From Eukaryota sp. TZLM1-RC (lineage: Eukaryota > Protista > Metamonada: BaSk clade), in the NCBI GenBank assembly GCA_040285825.1, contig JAUPSS010000005.1:1550001-1614000 (forward strand): 64,000 bases of DNA. The letters run 5' to 3'. A model generated the notes under the pieces. The model had not been told where the DNA came from. It saw only the letters and a program-made list of their open reading frames with translations, and did no database searches. Shown here one piece after another: positions 1,281 through 9,000 of the stretch. The position numbers and the translations under genes are program-made. How positions within the stretch are numbered: the first letter of the stretch is position 1; each line of letters starts with the position of its first letter.

Positions 1281-4200
1281 CTAATTGGAAAAGTTCCACA
1301 AACTAGCTCTGGCTATTGGCCCTGCTCTACTACGAGTGGAAGCACTTTGAATTTCTGTCCCTGGTGAAAAAGGTGATGGCGGTGATAGGGGTGTTAGGGG
1401 TGTGGGACGATAATTTAACCCAGATGATGTTAATGGAGGCAAATCATCAGGTAGATGAATGTCCACTCCCTTCTTCACCTCATCTATTGACCAGACCTTT
1501 GTCCACATCTCGGGTTGCATGTTCAAAGAAAGGTAATTGTGAAAATACGGAACTTTCAGATTAGGATCTTCATCAGAAGGCATCCTCTTTTTGGGAAGGT
1601 ATTCAAAAAGATTGTAAAACAATGCAAATACTCTGAACAACGATAAAACTAATCGGTAGAGAGGTGCCAGTAACACTACAACGAGAGGACTTTGGAGGTC
1701 CTTTCGACGGCGTAATTTGACATAGTTAAAAGCAAAAAACACAATATACTGGAGCAAAAGCACTCTGAAATATATCAAGAATAATGAATTAACATCATCA
1801 TGCATGACAAAGTACAAAATAATTAAGAAATGGAAATAATCCCTGATGATAGTGATAATTTCATAAATATAAAATGGCTTGAGAATGATGGTGTTAACGT
1901 TCCAATAGCGTACTAAATGCTCCAGGTACTTGAAGAAGAATCTGTGGGCACACGCATCCTACAGTTAAATGGGAAAAAGAGTCACAAACCCATGATTTGA
2001 CTCGTTGATTGAATAAAGATTTCTCATCAACACAGTGATCCCCAAACAAATCCTCTCCCAGGTGGAAAAGGTCTTCCGGAGCTTGTGTGAGTGCTGGGGT
2101 CGCCGCCAAACAAATCAATCTCTTCATCCTGCCGTTTATTGATTTTTCTCTCAGAATAAACCCCATTTGAGCATCCTCACCATGAAAAGCACTAGAATTA
2201 CTACTAAATTGACCTAAAAACATACCTATTATGATGATCCAAAACAAAATTCAACTCTTTCTTTTTCCAAATCGAAATGGCACCGCTGAAATTAAAAAAC
2301 TAAAAAGATGAAACACACTGGGGGTAAGCACAGGTTCCAAACTTTTCTTGAACAAGTTTTAGTAATCCGCTTAGTAAATACTCCATATCCTGGAAAGCAA
2401 CCAGAAAAGATCTCCTTCTCCACGAATTTCGGTACTGAGGTCTATTCATGTCGGTTCTAATGGTGATGACTCCCCCTGCCACGTCATCTTCTGCTAATCG
2501 ATGGGTCTGCCAGCTCATATCTGCTGGAATCATGACATCATCATCCATAATTACGACATATTCTATTTCTGGACGATAAGCTAAAATGTTTTTGTTGACA
2601 TAATGTAAGCAGAACGTCTTATTACCAGTTGGTATGTAGACATAATTGACTGTTCTTCCCCAAGCTTTAACTTTTTTAATGACTTCAATGGTACCATCAT
2701 TGGGGAAAGGAGTAGGTCTATTAGCATTGTGACAGACATAAACATTACCATTTCCAACACTTCGACTAGCTAATCTTAGGGTTCTTTCAAAGTCAATAGC
2801 TTTTTGTTTCTTTAACTCCACCAGTTCTTCTCTTGATGGAGGTTTAATAAAGTTGTTTTTACAATTATTTAAAATCAAATCGGGATCTCTACCTGCCGAA
2901 ATATGACTTGCTATAAGGATGGCAACATTAGAATTATCATCATTAAACCCCTTGACTACTCGGTGTTCTGGCCAAGAAACAGTAAAGAAGGCGAGAATGA
3001 TGAGGAAATGTTCCAAGCCAAGGATGAACAAGGTGATGTAGAATCTATTAACGGAATGGAGAAACCTAGTCGCAACCATAAAATCTCGGTAAAAGAAAAA
3101 CAATAACAAAAACAAAATTAACGCGAAAAACATCCAAAAAACAATTTCCACCGTGTCTCTTGCACCAGGAGAATACTGTCTCTTCAATCTTTCAAAGGAT
3201 TCAAGCAACTCGATCCATGTATCATTACGAAATACTCTTGCAGGGGGTTCAGGCTGGTAATGTTGCCTGGCAGCAAGAGTTTCTTCGTCTTGGATTAATT
3301 CAAACCAGTTGTCTGGAAGAGAATGGTATTTCTCTTTTGAAGTGTTAATTGAACCTTTGAAAAAACCTTTGAATTTTTCAAACAACAATGCAAGAATTAA
3401 AAATAAAATGGAAATGGAAATTAAAAGAAAATCTAAAATGTCGAACCTATCCCAATCTACATCAAAAGCAAAGTATTCAATGCTAAGAAACCTGCAGATG
3501 GAACCATCATGAGAAGCTATATCTAAATTGAACCCTAGAAAATCAACATGACTTGCTTCCACTGTGACTGCAAAAGGAAAAGCATTTGTATCGATTCCAG
3601 TGATGTAAACAAAAACTTCAGGAATTCTCTGAAATTCATTATTGAAGAATATTCTACCAGAAAAAACATGGTGGCCCTTCAAATGTAACTCCCAATCATT
3701 GGTTAGATTCAACCCAAAAGATAATGATCCTCTATCAAAAGCATTAAACTTAAGAAAGGAAGAATTGAATGCCAATAATGCATATCTAACTTGCGTAAAC
3801 TCTCTCATTGTTGTAAGCCAGGTTTCAACTGACACTAAACCATTATACTGAGGGTGATGAGCAACTTCATAGTTTGTCTCTATTGAATTGGATTCAGTAA
3901 TGGTATCATCGTAATGAAACCTTACACCTCTAAAAGAGAAAAAAACCTCAACATCATCAACAAATTCATAACTCATGGGTAATGTGAATTGGCGGGGTAA
4001 TTGAGTACCAAAACCCAAATCGCTTGAACCTAATTGGTCATCTCCGTTGATACTAGAACTAAATGCAAATAAAGAAGGATCTTCAAAGCAAAGTGTACTA
4101 ATCGCAATCCATGAAAGAGTTATTGATTCAAGCAACGAGTTGTCAAATACTATCAAACGAACGGTGAAGTGATCAGCTGCTACAGTGGTTACAGAAACAT

Positions 4201-6349
4201 CAAAACCAATTTCTGGTGAGGTATGAATACTTGAAAAAGAAACAAAAACTTGTGGAGAATAACTAAAGGTTTTTGTAAAATAAACTTCATACTCAAAGGT
4301 TTTTTCTTCGCCTTTTTGATGCAGTCTCCATTCAGGAATTTGAGAAGAAAGTTGCACAACGCCAGACTCTACTAGGTAGGAGGGAGGACAAAGCAAGGGT
4401 CCAACAACAGATGATATTGAAGGGGGTTGCAGAATAATGAAAATGAACCCCAATAAAGCAAACAAAGCGGTGTAAAAGCAAATTCCCCTCAGTTTCTTTA
4501 ATCTACCGTCTCTATTCTCAAACTGGTTCTTTGGTAAAAATGGTAAAACCTCTTCATCTTCGTCTTTTAAATTGTGGTTGTCAGAGACGGAATTTTCATC
4601 AGGGATAGTGATTTGCAAAATGTTTTGTTCCAAATGTTGGTTATCAAAGGGAAGTTCCCCATCATCAATGCCAAAATCATCACCTTCGACGACATTTGGT
4701 TGGCCATAATCACCAGATTCAGTTGAAGAGTCGGAATCATGCTTTGATTCAATCTGACCTACCTCAATATGCCGATTACGATTGCTGGACGAATCATTAT
4801 TTGAATCATACTCCAACTCCAACCCTGTTGCCAATGACAACTCCTTCCTAAAGACGGGATCTGATAGCATAACGTAGGGAATTTGATGTTCTGTGACGAG
4901 AATAGGTTGAGAATTGGTTGAGTCTGACCTCAATTCTTCGATTGGATGTGGATTTGATTGATTAACTGATTGATTAACTGCTTGATTAACTACTGTTTTT
5001 TCTAGTATGGGATCAGCCTCGCCTTGGAATCTCTGACCTTTAACCAACCTTACTCTTTTGAAAAACAAGCATGTGTTGAGGGAATCGTGAACATCTGCAG
5101 GATTTAAAGAAAGATTAGCAATCATTTGAATTCTAGGACAATACTGGAGACAAAATCTCAAAACAGAGGTGAATAAGCAGTTCCTGTAAGGAATGTGGGT
5201 CTTTCTTGAGGTAATTGAATTCAAAACTCTTTCTAAAAAGAAAAGGCTCTTGTTGATTGTGACAGATTCCTTGAAATAGAGAGAACTCCGGTGTAAATCT
5301 CTATCAAACGCTGCTAAATCTACAAAAACTAACTTTGAATGAGTTTGTAATTCTCTAGAAATCAAATGAATAGAAAAAATACCATGTCCTCTCGTGGAGA
5401 CCTTATTAGATTTAGTTTTCCTTATTGTCCTAAAACTGGACCCCCGTGCCAGCTTTACCATTGCATCTCTTAGATTATCAACCTTTAATTGACTTAGTCC
5501 CGGAATGATGCTGATTTGTTGGTTGGCGGAAGCAGACATCACTAGTGAAGAGTTTAGAAGAACAGGTTTCTCTTCACCTTTGGTAGTTACCTCAATGGAG
5601 AGTAAATCCGAAACACCTTCACCATGAACTTCGAGATAAGAGAAGTGGACTTCTTGATCTTCAGATAGATTGGAGAATATAGATTTTAAACACCGTGGAA
5701 TTAAACCAAGAGACTCAGCGGAGTTTTCCAAAAGTGATCCGAATAAAGTGTAGCTTTTCCCTGCACCTGATCCTCCGTGATTCATAATGGTGGTTGATTT
5801 ATTTGCAAACAAGGCTGAAACACTGGGGAGACCAACGTCCTTAAAGACAGCAAAATTATCATTATCAAAGACTCTAGTAAAGGGGAAGGTCCAAGTTTCC
5901 TTAACATGATCAGGGCCTTGTTGGGAAAACGAGTGAGGTACCTTGATGGTAATTGATTCGGTAAGTTCATCATGCTTGATAAGAGAAGTATGATGGACAT
6001 CCTGATCATTCTGAGGTGTTGTCAATTTACAATAAGCAGCAAGAGGTTTAACATTAAAATGCTTGTTTGCGGTGATTTCCAGGTCTTGAACATTGTCATA
6101 ATCACTGTTTGAAATGTTCAACTGATGAGAAGAGCCTTCTCTTACAGAAGACCACAGAGCAGAAGTACTTGGTTGAGTGGGAAGAGAATATTGTACTTGT
6201 CTTTTTGTGACAGAGGATATCTCTTGAGAAGAACTCTGTGACTGGTTGTCAAGTGACGATTGTAAAGATGAAGCTGTGACGTGCCTGTTTTCCTCAACAT
6301 TTCGAGCGAATGATGACAGTTCCTTCAGAGAGACAAGATTGTGTGACAT
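1281..6349 (-). CDS. Kinesin motor (kinesin-9-like) + H-type lectin + processive GT2 glycosyltransferase fusion, multi-pass membrane protein, ~1656 aa, 4 exons
   Basis: Exons 6349-2319, 2285-2226, 2191-1990 and 1958-1281, joined by GT-AG introns of 33, 34 and 31 nt, total 4971 nt in frame. Kinesin (~5955-5045): GGSGAGKSYT, NKVSTRGHGIF, FVDLAAFDR, HIPYRN. TM ~4490-4430. H-lectin-like repeats (VYFTKTFSYSPQVFVSF; IFFNNEFQRIPEVFVYITGID). Three more TMs. GT2: GNKT, IMDDDV, FQDMEY, YPHGAISIW, FHGED, QRVKSWD. C-terminal TMs. Confidence 0.88.
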
Positions 6350-6387
6350 CAAATCGATCGGTGCTGATATTACAATATTTAAATCAT

Positions 6388-7590
6388 GGGTCAGGGACAC
6401 ACCTGCCCACTTTTTTGAAAAGTGAAACACACCTACCCACTGCTGAATTTTTTGGTACTTCTGTACCCAATTGTTTTAAGGATACTTATCCATCCCGATT
6501 TGTTTGATGATGTAATCATGTTTGTGTTTCTTAATTACTTGGTACGTTAACCAAACTCATCTCAAACATTGGCAGTAACAAAAACAGTAGCAACCGCATC
6601 GCAAAGTCCTTTTTCTCTGTCGGAAACAATGGTGTTGATATCTGAACCATATGCATCACGAAAACGTTGACAAAACCAGGTCCAGTTGTCTTTGTTTTCG
6701 GTCGACACTACTGCAAAGGCCAGTGGAAACAAATGGCCCTCTGCATCAATGGACGTGGATGTCAACAACACTTGTTTATGTTTGGTTTTCAAGTGCGTCC
6801 CATCCAGAAGAACCATTGAACGACAAAATGCAAATCCCTTGATTGTACCTTGCAGCGCTATGAAGAGTCGTCTAAAGGTGTCAGTTGTATTTTTTTCAAG
6901 ATCAATAACACTTCCGGGGTTTCTTTGACTTAAAAGTTCCAAATAGTGGTCAAGTTTTTTGTAGCTTGATTCTTCAGTTCCATAAAGACTGGTTTTAATC
7001 ATGTGCCGTACCCGCTTAACAGTGTGATTGGGAAGTATAAATCCAGCCGCTGTGTTTAAATCCACTTTCAAATGCTTGGAGCTGATGGCAGGATCCTTTT
7101 GGATTTTTGTACGAATGGATGTCAAAGAGGCAAGGTAATCTGTGGAAGGAGGAAGATTCTTGTAGGAAGAAGTTAGATTACCATCACAGGAATGAGCTTT
7201 ATACCGCTTAACCTCATAAGGAGTTGTTGTAGAAGCGGATTTAGGTCGTGTAGCATAGCATTCAAACGTACATCTTTTATTTTTGCAACGAGCATAAATT
7301 CTTGTATGTTCAGACTTTTTGTAGACACAATAGGCACTGCTATGGACACAATCTAGCCGAATCAGTTCCTTTATGATTTCCATCGAAGCCAGGGAACCGA
7401 TTTTCAAGAGATAATCGGTGTCGTTATGTTTGAGAGTTATAGTTGATTCAGCAACAACGGAAGAGGTTGTTGTCATGTCCAATCTGCAAAGAAGTCCTAT
7501 CAGTAAAAAAGTGGGTAGATGTGTTCACTTTATTGTGGTGGGTAGACGTGTTCCACTTTTTGCAAAAATGGGTAGATGTGTACTTTTCCC
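6388..7590 (-). mobile_element. Internally deleted Mutator-like (MULE) DNA transposon
   Basis: Imperfect ~53-bp TIRs starting GGG and containing ACACAyCTrCCCA repeats. Exact 9-bp TSD TTAAATCAT at 6379-6387 and 7591-7599. Confidence 0.93.
6562..7476 (-). pseudogene. C-terminally truncated MULE transposase
   Basis: LLDGTHLKTK...SIDAEGHLFPLAFAVVSTENKDNWTWF...IVSDREKGL. The ORF stops before the CxxH motif, catalytic E and SWIM region. Confidence 0.9.
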
Positions 7591-7682
7591 TTAAATCATA
7601 TAACTGTAATTTTTTTAAACTGGAATATTTATTGAGAAAAAAAATCTGTGATTTGTTCATACATTCTTCAGTGAGATTCATA

Positions 7683-7913
7683 CCTGTTTCCAACTTTCTC
7701 AATGTCTACTCACAGGCTGTAAGATAAATGTAGCGTCATTTGACAAAGACAATCATGATCTTCATCAATGGGCTACCTCACTTAAATACACCTACTGCTT
7801 TCACAGAACAAAGCCTCGCGACTTGATGTATCTAAGTGGATCTACCAAATGCTACTAAGGCATTTGTAGATCGGTCTCAAAAGTTTTAGTTTCTGTATGC
7901 TCGCGTTCCCTAT
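7683..7913 (-). ncRNA. Putative Fanzor omegaRNA scaffold (family A, copy 1)
   Basis: Non-coding region directly downstream of the nuclease, conserved in copy 2 (26282-26510). Stems: 7839-7852 with 7860-7872; 7779-7790 with 7827-7838, which needs a G-U pair on the minus strand. Confidence 0.55.
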
Positions 7914-9000
7914 TCATCTCCTCAACAGAGCATCTGGGCAAATGTATCTTTCCGGCCACAATTGCGCTTTCTTCTTAGTTTGAATATTTTTTGCAGCGGA
8001 AATATCTCTGTCATATACTATTTGACACTCATTACAAATACGCATCTGCCATGAGCTTGCTTGAATATTCTCGGCCATGCAACAACTTGACAGTTTGCTT
8101 GTATTAAATTCACTGGTTGGCAAGTGCTTCACGTCCTTTTGATGACACAGCCATTTTCTGAAATCCCTAGCTGATCCATATCGATTGACCTTTCGGCAAT
8201 CAGAAGGGAAATTAGCAGTACCCACAACAAGACAGAGTTTTTCAGGATGTCCAGCCAGCCTTTGAAATTTGTTGAGGCTCTCTCGGAACCGTCTCTCTTT
8301 TCGTCTGCGGTTATCAAATTTAATTATTTTCCATTTCTGGCGATTACTTTCCAAATACACTTTCCTCCTGACCAGTTTCCAATGGATCAAATATTGGTTG
8401 AAATTTTGAACGGAATATTGGTTGGGAGAGTGTTTACTGGGTGAAGGATTTGTCCTAACCTCCTGCCAGTTGGACAAGGGATAACTCCACATTGATAATC
8501 ATTTAAGAAGTAACCACATAATCTTGATTGGCCCAGATCAACGCCAATAAGGGGCCTTTCAGGTAAAATTTCGACTGGATGTCTACGTCTTCGACGGGGC
8601 ATTTTTTAGTGCCCTTCAACTGTGTTTCTCTGGTTTTGTTGGCATTAGGGTCACTTTTCATTTCATTTTTTGATCTTCTTTTCTATTTCGGTGGTTCATC
8701 CAGCTCATCTGTGTTTTCTGAGTCATTATTTTTACCCTCAAAGGTCAAAAGCAGTTCATTGCCATTAGTTTTCAATAAAAAATTTTTAATCTATTTTTCA
8801 AACTTTTTCTGTTGATATTGAATTTTTGGTAAGGACATTTTTTCAATATTCGTTTCAGACATGTATTTCTGATAAACTTTGTTTTGGACGATAATCCTTC
8901 GATAAGTGGAAATTTTTTCACAGAGTGGAAAACATGTAAAGGTACCTCATGAAATTTAGAACCTTTATGAGAAGCTAAAAGTATTATTCTAAATTTCTTC
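7914..9000 (-). pseudogene. Fanzor (TnpB-like RNA-guided nuclease) pseudogene, family A copy 1
   Basis: FTCFPL and LKTNGNELLLTF (Fanzor1-like upstream motifs), RuvC-I LIGVDLGQSRL, RuvC-II TSEFNTSKLSSCC, Zn finger ICNEC, RuvC-III YDRDISAAKNI. Frameshifts (one near 8458) and in-frame stops upstream. 5' limit approximate. Confidence 0.85.

Follow-up and report, generated by a model that had tools for sequence, protein, structure and literature searches.

Cells must choose where their wall polymers go, and fungi and molluscs fuse a myosin head to a chitin synthase. A locus of Skoliomonas litria (Eukaryota sp. TZLM1-RC) raises the question of whether a kinesin can likewise be joined to a polysaccharide synthase, and what such a protein would do. 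The locus lies at 1281..6349 on the minus strand of the stretch analyzed here (64,000 nucleotides of contig JAUPSS010000005.1, positions 1,550,001 to 1,614,000), which is called the window below. An initial annotation, made from the sequence alone, read it as one gene for a kinesin motor, H-type lectin repeats, and a processive synthase of glycosyltransferase family GT2, and its author knew of no such architecture. S. litria lives freely in soda lakes as an anaerobic metamonad that feeds on bacteria (PMC11603281, PMC11316075).

The three-part architecture holds by Pfam, profile, and structure-model evidence. The gene encodes a single polypeptide, in which a conserved kinesin head is followed by an outward-facing block of three H-type lectin modules beside a membrane-embedded core of the synthase type. 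We regard this description as almost certain. The function proposed below, a polysaccharide synthase tethered to microtubules, is stated with less confidence.

Gene structure and continuity of the reading frame

The gene consists of four exons and encodes a protein of 1656 amino acids that is identical to NCBI P9112_009699 (hereafter P0001), publicly named 'hypothetical protein'. A stop-free frame of 1376 codons extends over 2300..6430 on the minus strand, with its first Met at 6349, and the stop codon TAG is at 1283..1281. The exon pieces were translated separately, and each matched an exact substring of P0001 (residues 1-1343, 1345-1363, 1365-1431, and 1432-1656). The two residues between the pieces are encoded by the split codons CA/C (His) and AG/T (Ser). 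The coordinates, the first exon of 4031 nucleotides, and the three introns given in the initial annotation are thus all correct (Table 1).

The kinesin head, the first transmembrane (TM) helix TM1, the lectin modules, TM2 to TM4, and the first 220 residues of the GT2 domain share one open reading frame (ORF) and are joined without splicing. A stop-free frame of this length in DNA of 37% GC is not a product of chance, and it recurs in three other loci. Uninterrupted ORFs from kinesin to GT2 are found at four loci in three Skoliomonas species, encoding P0001 and its paralogue P0002 in S. litria, P0003 in TZLM3-RCL, and P0004 in GEM-RC1. At the level of genomic sequence, the kinesin-GT2 fusion is confirmed as real.

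Synthase core

The GT2 domain of P0001 contains the motifs VCHNAN, GNKT, DDD, QDMEY, PHGAIS, GED, and QRVKSW. DDD (residues 1269-1271) is encoded in exon 1, and GED (1368-1370) and QRVKSW (1426-1431) are encoded in exon 3, the latter at its end. An exhaustive search with a GT2 profile retrieved 498 representatives at E<=1e-3. The family is partly labeled, and its named sources are the barthelonid-skoliomonad lineage, Phalansterium, Stygiella, Andalucia, and Telonema. In an alignment of 50 sequences the signatures are CDNGN, GNKT, DDD, QD.EYK, PHGAIS.W, GED..MG, and QRV(R/K)SWD..HR. P0001 retains every residue that is invariant in these 50 members, including D1269, D1271, and D1370, and both the GT-A-type DxD and the ED-type catalytic Asp are among the invariant features.

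Searches of the PDB with the single GT2 sequence or with a profile of five sequences gave nothing meaningful. The profile of 50 sequences matched yeast Chs1 only (E 1e-5), with QD.EY, GAIS, and QR..W aligned. An AlphaFold2 model of residues 960-1580 was obtained with good scores (pLDDT 84, pTM 0.87). Its best structural match is the hyaluronan synthase (HAS) of a Chlorella virus (Foldseek E 9e-10; Z 23.3, root mean square deviation 3.2 over 374 residues). Chs1 (Z 21.1), Xenopus HAS1 (Z 20.6), BcsA (about Z 20), and plant cellulose synthase (CesA; Z 19) also match. These matches span the catalytic domain, the interface helices, and the membrane helices (model residues 137-595 for the Chlorella virus HAS, Chs1, and BcsA), whereas soluble, non-processive GT-A enzymes reach only about Z 15. 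Because the matches extend over the membrane helices and the soluble enzymes score so much lower, the GT2 part is, judging from the predicted structure, a membrane-integrated synthase of the HAS, chitin synthase (CHS), and CesA type that forms an uncharacterized subfamily. The initial reading of the domain as a synthase therefore stands, with predicted-structure matches of Z 19-23.

The relation to chitin synthases should be noted. The QDMEY motif of P0001 resembles the QxFEY motif of chitin synthases. The Trp of QRVKSW is followed by DACAHR in P0001, instead of the WGTR/K of chitin synthases. No Pfam Chitin_synth match (PF01644 or PF03142) was found in P0001, and a distant relative, P0052, gave a sub-threshold one of 16 bits. 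A chitin synthase proper was rejected for want of a family-model match.

Membrane topology

Hydropathy places helices of P0001 at residues 622-640, 971-989, 1069-1087, and 1105-1123, and two to three further ones after the GT2 domain. In the AlphaFold2 model, the C-terminal helices align to the channel-forming helices of HAS, Chs1, and BcsA. The kinesin head and the GT2 domain must both be cytosolic, because the former requires microtubules and ATP and the latter requires UDP-sugars. Four helices lie between them, and residues 641-970, which hold the lectin modules, therefore face the outside. An extracellular or luminal position of these residues fits with two cysteines, C654 and C754, which are kept in all five kinesin-clade homologues, and with two N-x-S/T sequons in the ectodomain of P0001. 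The kinesin head and the GT2 domain are thus in the cytosol and the lectins outside, which is the arrangement that the initial annotation had derived from the helix count.

The C-terminal tail (residues 1555-1656) has no Pfam match. Its conserved first half reads EYLPKKRMP..EDP.LKVPY.HNYLSL..PEMW.K.W...V.KG...LPDDLPP. Basic clusters flank the preceding long helix (1523-1554) on both sides and are compatible with a tail on either side of the membrane.

Lectin ectodomain

Pfam H_lectin (PF09458) matches two stretches of the P0001 ectodomain (E 1e-20). A single-sequence search of the ectodomain against the PDB gave spurious repeat matches only. A profile of modules 1 and 3, built from nine proteins, matches discoidin-1 (E 5e-8), the snail agglutinins of Helix aspersa (HAA; 3e-7) and Helix pomatia (HPA; 8e-7), and also discoidin-2 and the coral lectin SLL-2. 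The AlphaFold2 model of the ectodomain (pLDDT 82, pTM 0.84) shows three six-stranded modules, and single modules superpose on HPA and SLL-2 with TM-scores by target of 0.71-0.75. The whole ectodomain superposes on a fungal H-lectin protein of 272 amino acids (TM-score 0.71 by query and 0.85 by target, 264 residues); this partner is annotated by Pfam as H_lectin only, and both sides of the match are predictions. Since the model has three modules and Pfam sees three H_lectin stretches in the relatives P0039 and P0042, we count three modules rather than two. The initial annotation had allowed for two or perhaps three repeats of H-type lectin character; the repeats do model as H-type lectins, and the middle one is real by predicted structure.

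H-type lectins form trimers of three subunits. In P0001, the three modules most likely pack as a single-chain pseudo-trimer of the same kind, judging from the model. Module 3 ends at residue 968 and TM2 begins at residue 971, and TM2 is modeled at a pLDDT of about 90 and packed on the synthase core. The lectin block must therefore lie on the outside, immediately next to the synthase. In the modeled arrangement, it is plausible that the block holds the glycan extruded by its own synthase.

The sugar specificity was considered through the residues that we take to be the N-acetylgalactosamine (GalNAc) contacts of HPA, namely D26, R63, H84, and Y89. In a HMMER alignment to HPA and a further alignment, R63 is replaced by Gly in module 1 and Ala in module 3, Y89 by Glu and Arg, and H84 by Asp in both, and D26 falls in an insertion. 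GalNAc specificity, which the initial annotation had connected with the GalNAc polymer of the Giardia cyst wall, thus finds no support. The fold does not imply GalNAc in any case, because discoidins bind methylated rhamnose according to a 2026 preprint (10.64898/2026.06.18.733164).

Kinesin head

Pfam Kinesin (PF00225) matches residues 140-435 of P0001 (E 1e-53). At E<1e-3, 154 kinesin chains of the PDB were retrieved, of which KLP1 (7n61) is the best (E 1.6e-29). KIF9, a kinesin-9, follows at 6e-28, and kinesin-5 and kinesin-1 at about 2e-27, roughly 100-fold weaker than the best. By PDB match scores, the closest solved relatives are, by a narrow margin, the axonemal kinesin-9 proteins KLP1 and KIF9, and an assignment to kinesin-9 would be tentative.

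The identity between homologues is 70-96% in the GT2 domain, 45-75% in the kinesin domain, 25-58% in the lectins, and 13-27% in the linker. Selection thus maintains the kinesin, whose values lie above those of the linker, rather than letting it decay. By these values, each part of the fusion protein is under selection.

The nucleotide-binding motifs are partly unusual. The P-loop, GGSGAGKS, is non-canonical compared with GQTGxGK[ST] and retains the Walker A pattern GxxxxGK[ST], and switch I reads STRGH. In switch II, Ala replaces the conserved Gly of DLAGxE in all four kinesin-GT2 proteins, whose sequences are DLAAFD, DLAAFD, DLAAFE, and DLAAPI. In contrast, DLAG is present in 27 of the 27 other kinesins from the full-length-query search in which the motif pattern was found. 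The mutation G234A at the switch II glycine gives a motor-defective KIF17 (PMC4547097), and the passage of that paper on the motor-dead G234A cites Rice et al. 1999. The first approximately 15 residues of the linker form a conserved neck-like stretch; no coiled coil was found behind it, and the rest of the linker is disordered and variable.

These features bear on whether the head moves. It could be an active plus-end-directed motor that hauls synthase vesicles, or the synthase in the plasma membrane, along microtubules to the site of deposition. The head is N-terminal and followed by the neck-like stretch, its Walker A motif, switch I Arg, and switch II Asp are retained, and the domain is well conserved, all of which would suit a working motor. 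However, the switch II Gly is lost in every one of the four proteins and the trailing Glu is also lost in P0004, the KIF17 mutant with the same change is motor-dead, a dimerizing coiled coil after the neck-like stretch is lacking, and the nearest analogue, the myosin head of Mcs1, tethers instead of moving. We therefore consider an active motor unlikely. Because DLAA is common to all four heads and the KIF17 G234A mutant is motor-defective, the head is likelier to tether than to walk on microtubules; by sequence and by analogy, it would be a conserved domain that binds microtubules but steps poorly or not at all. The word 'motor' in the initial annotation is weakened to this extent.

Relatives and origin of the fusion

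A quick maximum-likelihood analysis of the synthase core, with the tree rooted at the midpoint, unites the five kinesin-clade proteins in one clade at 100% support. This clade is nested in a lectin-GT2 clade, also supported at 100%, in which Barthelona PCE branches first. The kinesin-less lectin-GT2 proteins are P0038 and P0190 of the S. litria genome P0037, P0039, and P0042, and, from Barthelona PCE, P0040. They are 39-43% identical to P0001 in the synthase core and have the same TM-lectin-TM-TM-TM-GT2 core; at the N-terminus they have either a signal anchor or three TM helices preceded by an additional extracellular domain. By this tree, with the kinesin clade nested and Barthelona branching first, the lectin plus GT2 unit is the older core of the lineage. 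The kinesin was captured once, before the three Skoliomonas species split, and the gene was duplicated later in S. litria and in GEM-RC1.

A protein search with the full-length query found nothing outside Skoliomonas with both a kinesin and this GT2; the kinesin-lectin-GT2 architecture was found in this genus only. Among 29 long members of the wider family scanned with Pfam, none showed a kinesin, myosin, or lectin domain. Giardia and its kin yielded no relative; word-based searches with a profile and with the Barthelona GT2 region returned the same clade only and could not exclude one. At the sensitivity reached here, the lectin-GT2 core family is limited to the barthelonid-skoliomonad lineage. 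Literature searches likewise bore out the annotator's unfamiliarity with the architecture, since they brought up no description of a membrane protein that joins a GT2 to a kinesin or to an H-lectin. The two Skoliomonas papers (PMC11603281, PMC11316075) make no mention of kinesin, chitin, or glycosyltransferase.

Other N-terminal extensions were observed in the wider family. P0048, P0053, P0054, P0055, and P0051, from a sister GT2 clade of skoliomonads and barthelonids, are 2100-3200 amino acids long, and their N-terminal extensions of 1300-2200 residues have no recognizable Pfam domain. In Skoliomonas sp. GEM-RC1 (locus L003, 4032-7361; GEMRC1_001142), an Hsp70 nucleotide-binding domain (Pfam E 5e-40) is joined in one ORF of 1109 amino acids to two H-lectin stretches and the beginning of a synthase core, which represents a second kind of N-terminal capture. 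The C-terminal half of the GT2 domain (P0041) is annotated as a separate gene 300 nucleotides downstream (7670-8748 of the same locus). About 90 GT2 residues are missing between the two ORFs; the gap may reflect an intron, a frameshift, or a pseudogene.

Comparison with known systems

The fungal class V and VII chitin synthases, such as Ustilago Mcs1 and Aspergillus CsmA, are alike in having an N-terminal motor head and a membrane-integrated processive GT2. Mollusc chitin synthases also carry a myosin head. The head of Mcs1 and CsmA is a myosin that acts with actin, whereas that of Skoliomonas is a kinesin, whose track is the microtubule. The Skoliomonas GT2 differs further in belonging to another subfamily and in having a three-module lectin ectodomain between TM1 and TM2. 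Contacts between the myosin-17 head of Mcs1 and actin are transient, and the head is immotile in vitro; it tethers vesicles prior to exocytosis (PMC3252574). This tethering head parallels the degenerate switch II of the Skoliomonas head.

In plants, cellulose synthase complexes are guided along cortical microtubules via CSI1/POM2. The likeness lies in a microtubule-coupled synthase of the plasma membrane by which the cytoskeleton patterns the wall; the difference is that the plant system uses a separate linker protein, whereas in Skoliomonas the putative microtubule-binding module is in the same chain. The bacterial BcsA-BcsB pair shares the fold of the synthase core (about Z 20). BcsB is a membrane-anchored carbohydrate-binding partner above the channel exit. 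It is a separate subunit of other folds, whereas the putative binding modules of Skoliomonas are H-type lectins of the same chain.

The class I hyaluronan synthases of Chlorella virus and vertebrates include the best structural match, but their identity is 12-14%, with no match at the sequence level, no motor, and no lectin, and their motifs differ from GED, QRVKSW, and VCHNAN. The kinesin-less lectin-GT2 proteins are alike in the core and differ in lacking the kinesin. HPA/HAA, discoidin I/II, and SLL-2 are alike in profile, in fold, and in the probable packing of three units; the Skoliomonas modules differ in lying in one chain that is anchored in the membrane at both ends, and in the replacement of the presumed GalNAc contacts. 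Fusions of a motor with a synthase are already known. This one differs from them in its type of motor, in the part of the cytoskeleton that it addresses, in its GT2 subfamily, and in carrying a lectin block within the chain.

Proposed function and its alternatives

The best overall explanation of these features is a microtubule-tethered polysaccharide synthase with an outer lectin block, which we consider moderately probable. The GT2 domain would polymerize a UDP-sugar in the cytosol and extrude the chain through its own channel, with the C-terminal helices and TM2 to TM4 forming the synthase core. The lectin block at the channel exit would handle the new chain or grip polymer already laid down. 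The kinesin head would serve as a built-in microtubule tether that holds or captures the synthase or its vesicles, and tethering along cortical or root microtubules would let the cytoskeleton set where the polymer is deposited. The most likely destination of the polymer would be a cyst wall or another surface layer. This combination of tether and synthase is offered tentatively as the mechanism.

Several points weigh against this explanation. The claim of one chain is based on genomic ORFs and gene models. The Pfam model Glyco_tranf_2_3 gives P0001 20.8-21.9 bits, below the cutoff of 27 bits; the orthologue P0003 scores 33.4 bits, above it. QRVKSW (QRV(R/K)SW in the family) is one residue longer than the classical QxxRW, and its counterpart in the alignment to Chs1 is QRRRW. 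In all nine lectin-clade proteins, His (VCHNAN) replaces the first nucleotide-binding Asp of the family signature CDNGN, and the binding of the donor may therefore differ. Sugar binding by the ectodomain is presumptive, as modules 1 and 3 lack the presumed GalNAc contacts of HPA. Hydrolysis of ATP may also persist in natural kinesins whose switch motifs are unusual. Finally, double-walled plugged cysts are formed by the isolate TZLM3-RCL, and cysts are reported for this isolate only, not for S. litria (PMC11603281). A surface layer other than a cyst wall is therefore equally open as the product.

Some of these points would favor a GT2 that is not processive and transfers a single sugar to a lipid or protein acceptor, with lectins that bind foreign glycans, on prey bacteria or the substrate, as a sensor or adhesin. 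Beside the weak Pfam match and the His at the first Asp position, the archaeal mannosyltransferase PcManGT matches the model as well as HAS does (Z 22.5), H-type domains can recognize microbial glycans (10.64898/2026.06.18.733164), and the organism feeds on bacteria (PMC11603281). However, the matches to HAS, Chs1, and BcsA reach across the membrane and interface helices, the GED base and an elongated motif of QxxRW type are present and invariant, and soluble, non-processive GT-A enzymes stay far below in Z. A single-sugar transferase is accordingly quite improbable. That the fusion is an annotation or assembly artefact merging two adjacent genes is hardly credible: several Skoliomonas gene models are plainly cut or split (e.g. 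P0003, P0005, and P0102/P0041), but one stop-free frame requiring no splicing is found at four independent loci of three species, the N-terminus is conserved, and the even number of TM helices agrees with the topology.

If the tethered synthase is real, the kinesin fusion would be a third independent way of placing wall polymers, and the first in which the synthase and its link to microtubules share a chain. The lectin block beside the channel exit would be a compact natural model for receiving a nascent chain outside the membrane. Localization and wall chemistry are open to testing, because the organisms are cultured and one of the isolates encysts.

A bolder version of the tethered synthase, which we hold to be rather doubtful, is that the cortical or root microtubule array directly templates the place and perhaps the orientation of wall fibrils, that the lectin cap receives the chain, and that the protein builds the skoliomonad cyst wall. 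The principle of plant CesA, CSI1, and microtubules would then have been reinvented within one polypeptide. The barthelonid-skoliomonad lineage, in which the lectin-GT2 proteins occur, is sister to the group with Giardia, and the kinesin-less relatives might, if this version were true, point to the family of enzymes responsible for the cyst wall synthase activity of the related diplomonads, to which no gene has yet been assigned. The Giardia cyst wall synthase is known as an enzyme activity only, according to a 2026 review (PMC13315228). A link between it and this GT2 family is speculation.

Feature positions, gene models of homologues, and neighboring sequences

The positions of the features in the window and of the ORFs at the other three loci are listed in Table 1.

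Table 1. Features of the kinesin-lectin-GT2 gene of S. litria and corresponding ORFs at other loci
Feature	Position	Strand	Residues or length	Remark
Exons	6349-2319, 2285-2226, 2191-1990, 1958-1281	-	4031, 60, 202, 678 nucleotides	last exon includes the stop codon
Intron 1	2318..2286	-	33 nucleotides	GT..AG
Intron 2	2225..2192	-	34 nucleotides	GT..AG
Intron 3	1989..1959	-	31 nucleotides	GT..AG
Kinesin motor-like domain	5045..5932	-	residues 140-435 by Pfam	conserved block about 111-460
P-loop GGSGAGKS	5753..5776	-	residues 192-199	Walker A GxxxxGK[ST] retained
Switch II DLAAFD	5303..5320	-		Ala replaces conserved Gly
Linker	4487..4969	-	residues 461-621	Ser/Asp/Asn-rich; 13-27% identity between homologues
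TM1	4430..4486	-	residues 622-640	by hydropathy
Extracellular/luminal domain	3440..4429	-	residues 641-970	modules about 655-757, 758-866, 867-968
TM2, cytosolic loop, TM3, TM4	2981..3439	-	residues 971-993, 994-1065, 1066-1094, 1102-1123	
GT2 catalytic domain	1990..2980	-	residues 1124-1431	split by introns 1 and 2
C-terminal membrane helices	1590..1883	-	residues 1457-1483, 1487-1512, 1523-1554	the last is a long helix
C-terminal tail	1284..1589	-	residues 1555-1656	first half conserved
Locus L004, S. litria paralogue P0002	ORF 2501-6667		1388 amino acids	kinesin to GT2 in a single ORF
Locus L001, TZLM3-RCL, P0003	ORF 3001-6963		1320 amino acids	kinesin to GT2 in a single ORF
Locus L002, GEM-RC1, P0004	ORF 3125-6796		1223 amino acids	kinesin to GT2 in a single ORF

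Two homologous gene models deserve comment. The public model of P0003 (1403 amino acids) is truncated and stops just past QRVKSY. The absent C-terminal helices and tail are encoded just downstream on the plus strand (7333-8112 of locus L001 of TZLM3-RCL), with 57% identity to residues 1443-1656 of P0001 (E 1e-84), and are partly annotated as a separate gene of 169 amino acids. The model of P0005 (GEMRC1_007380, 1064 amino acids), a paralogue in GEM-RC1, starts within the final portion of the kinesin domain (MIASLDLDPG...) and does not reach QRVKSW. Either the gene was called wrongly or this paralogue is in the course of losing its kinesin.

Two further ORFs lie upstream of the gene in the window, both on the minus strand. 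An ORF of 306 amino acids at 6565-7482 has a MULE/Mutator transposase domain (Pfam E 3e-17) that is cut at the end of the ORF. This ORF ends 213 nucleotides upstream of the start codon of the kinesin-GT2 gene, and a transposon remnant therefore lies in the likely promoter region. An ORF of 192 amino acids at 7917-8492 has a Cas12f1-like TNB domain (Pfam E 6e-7) and is a fragment of a TnpB/Fanzor-type nuclease.

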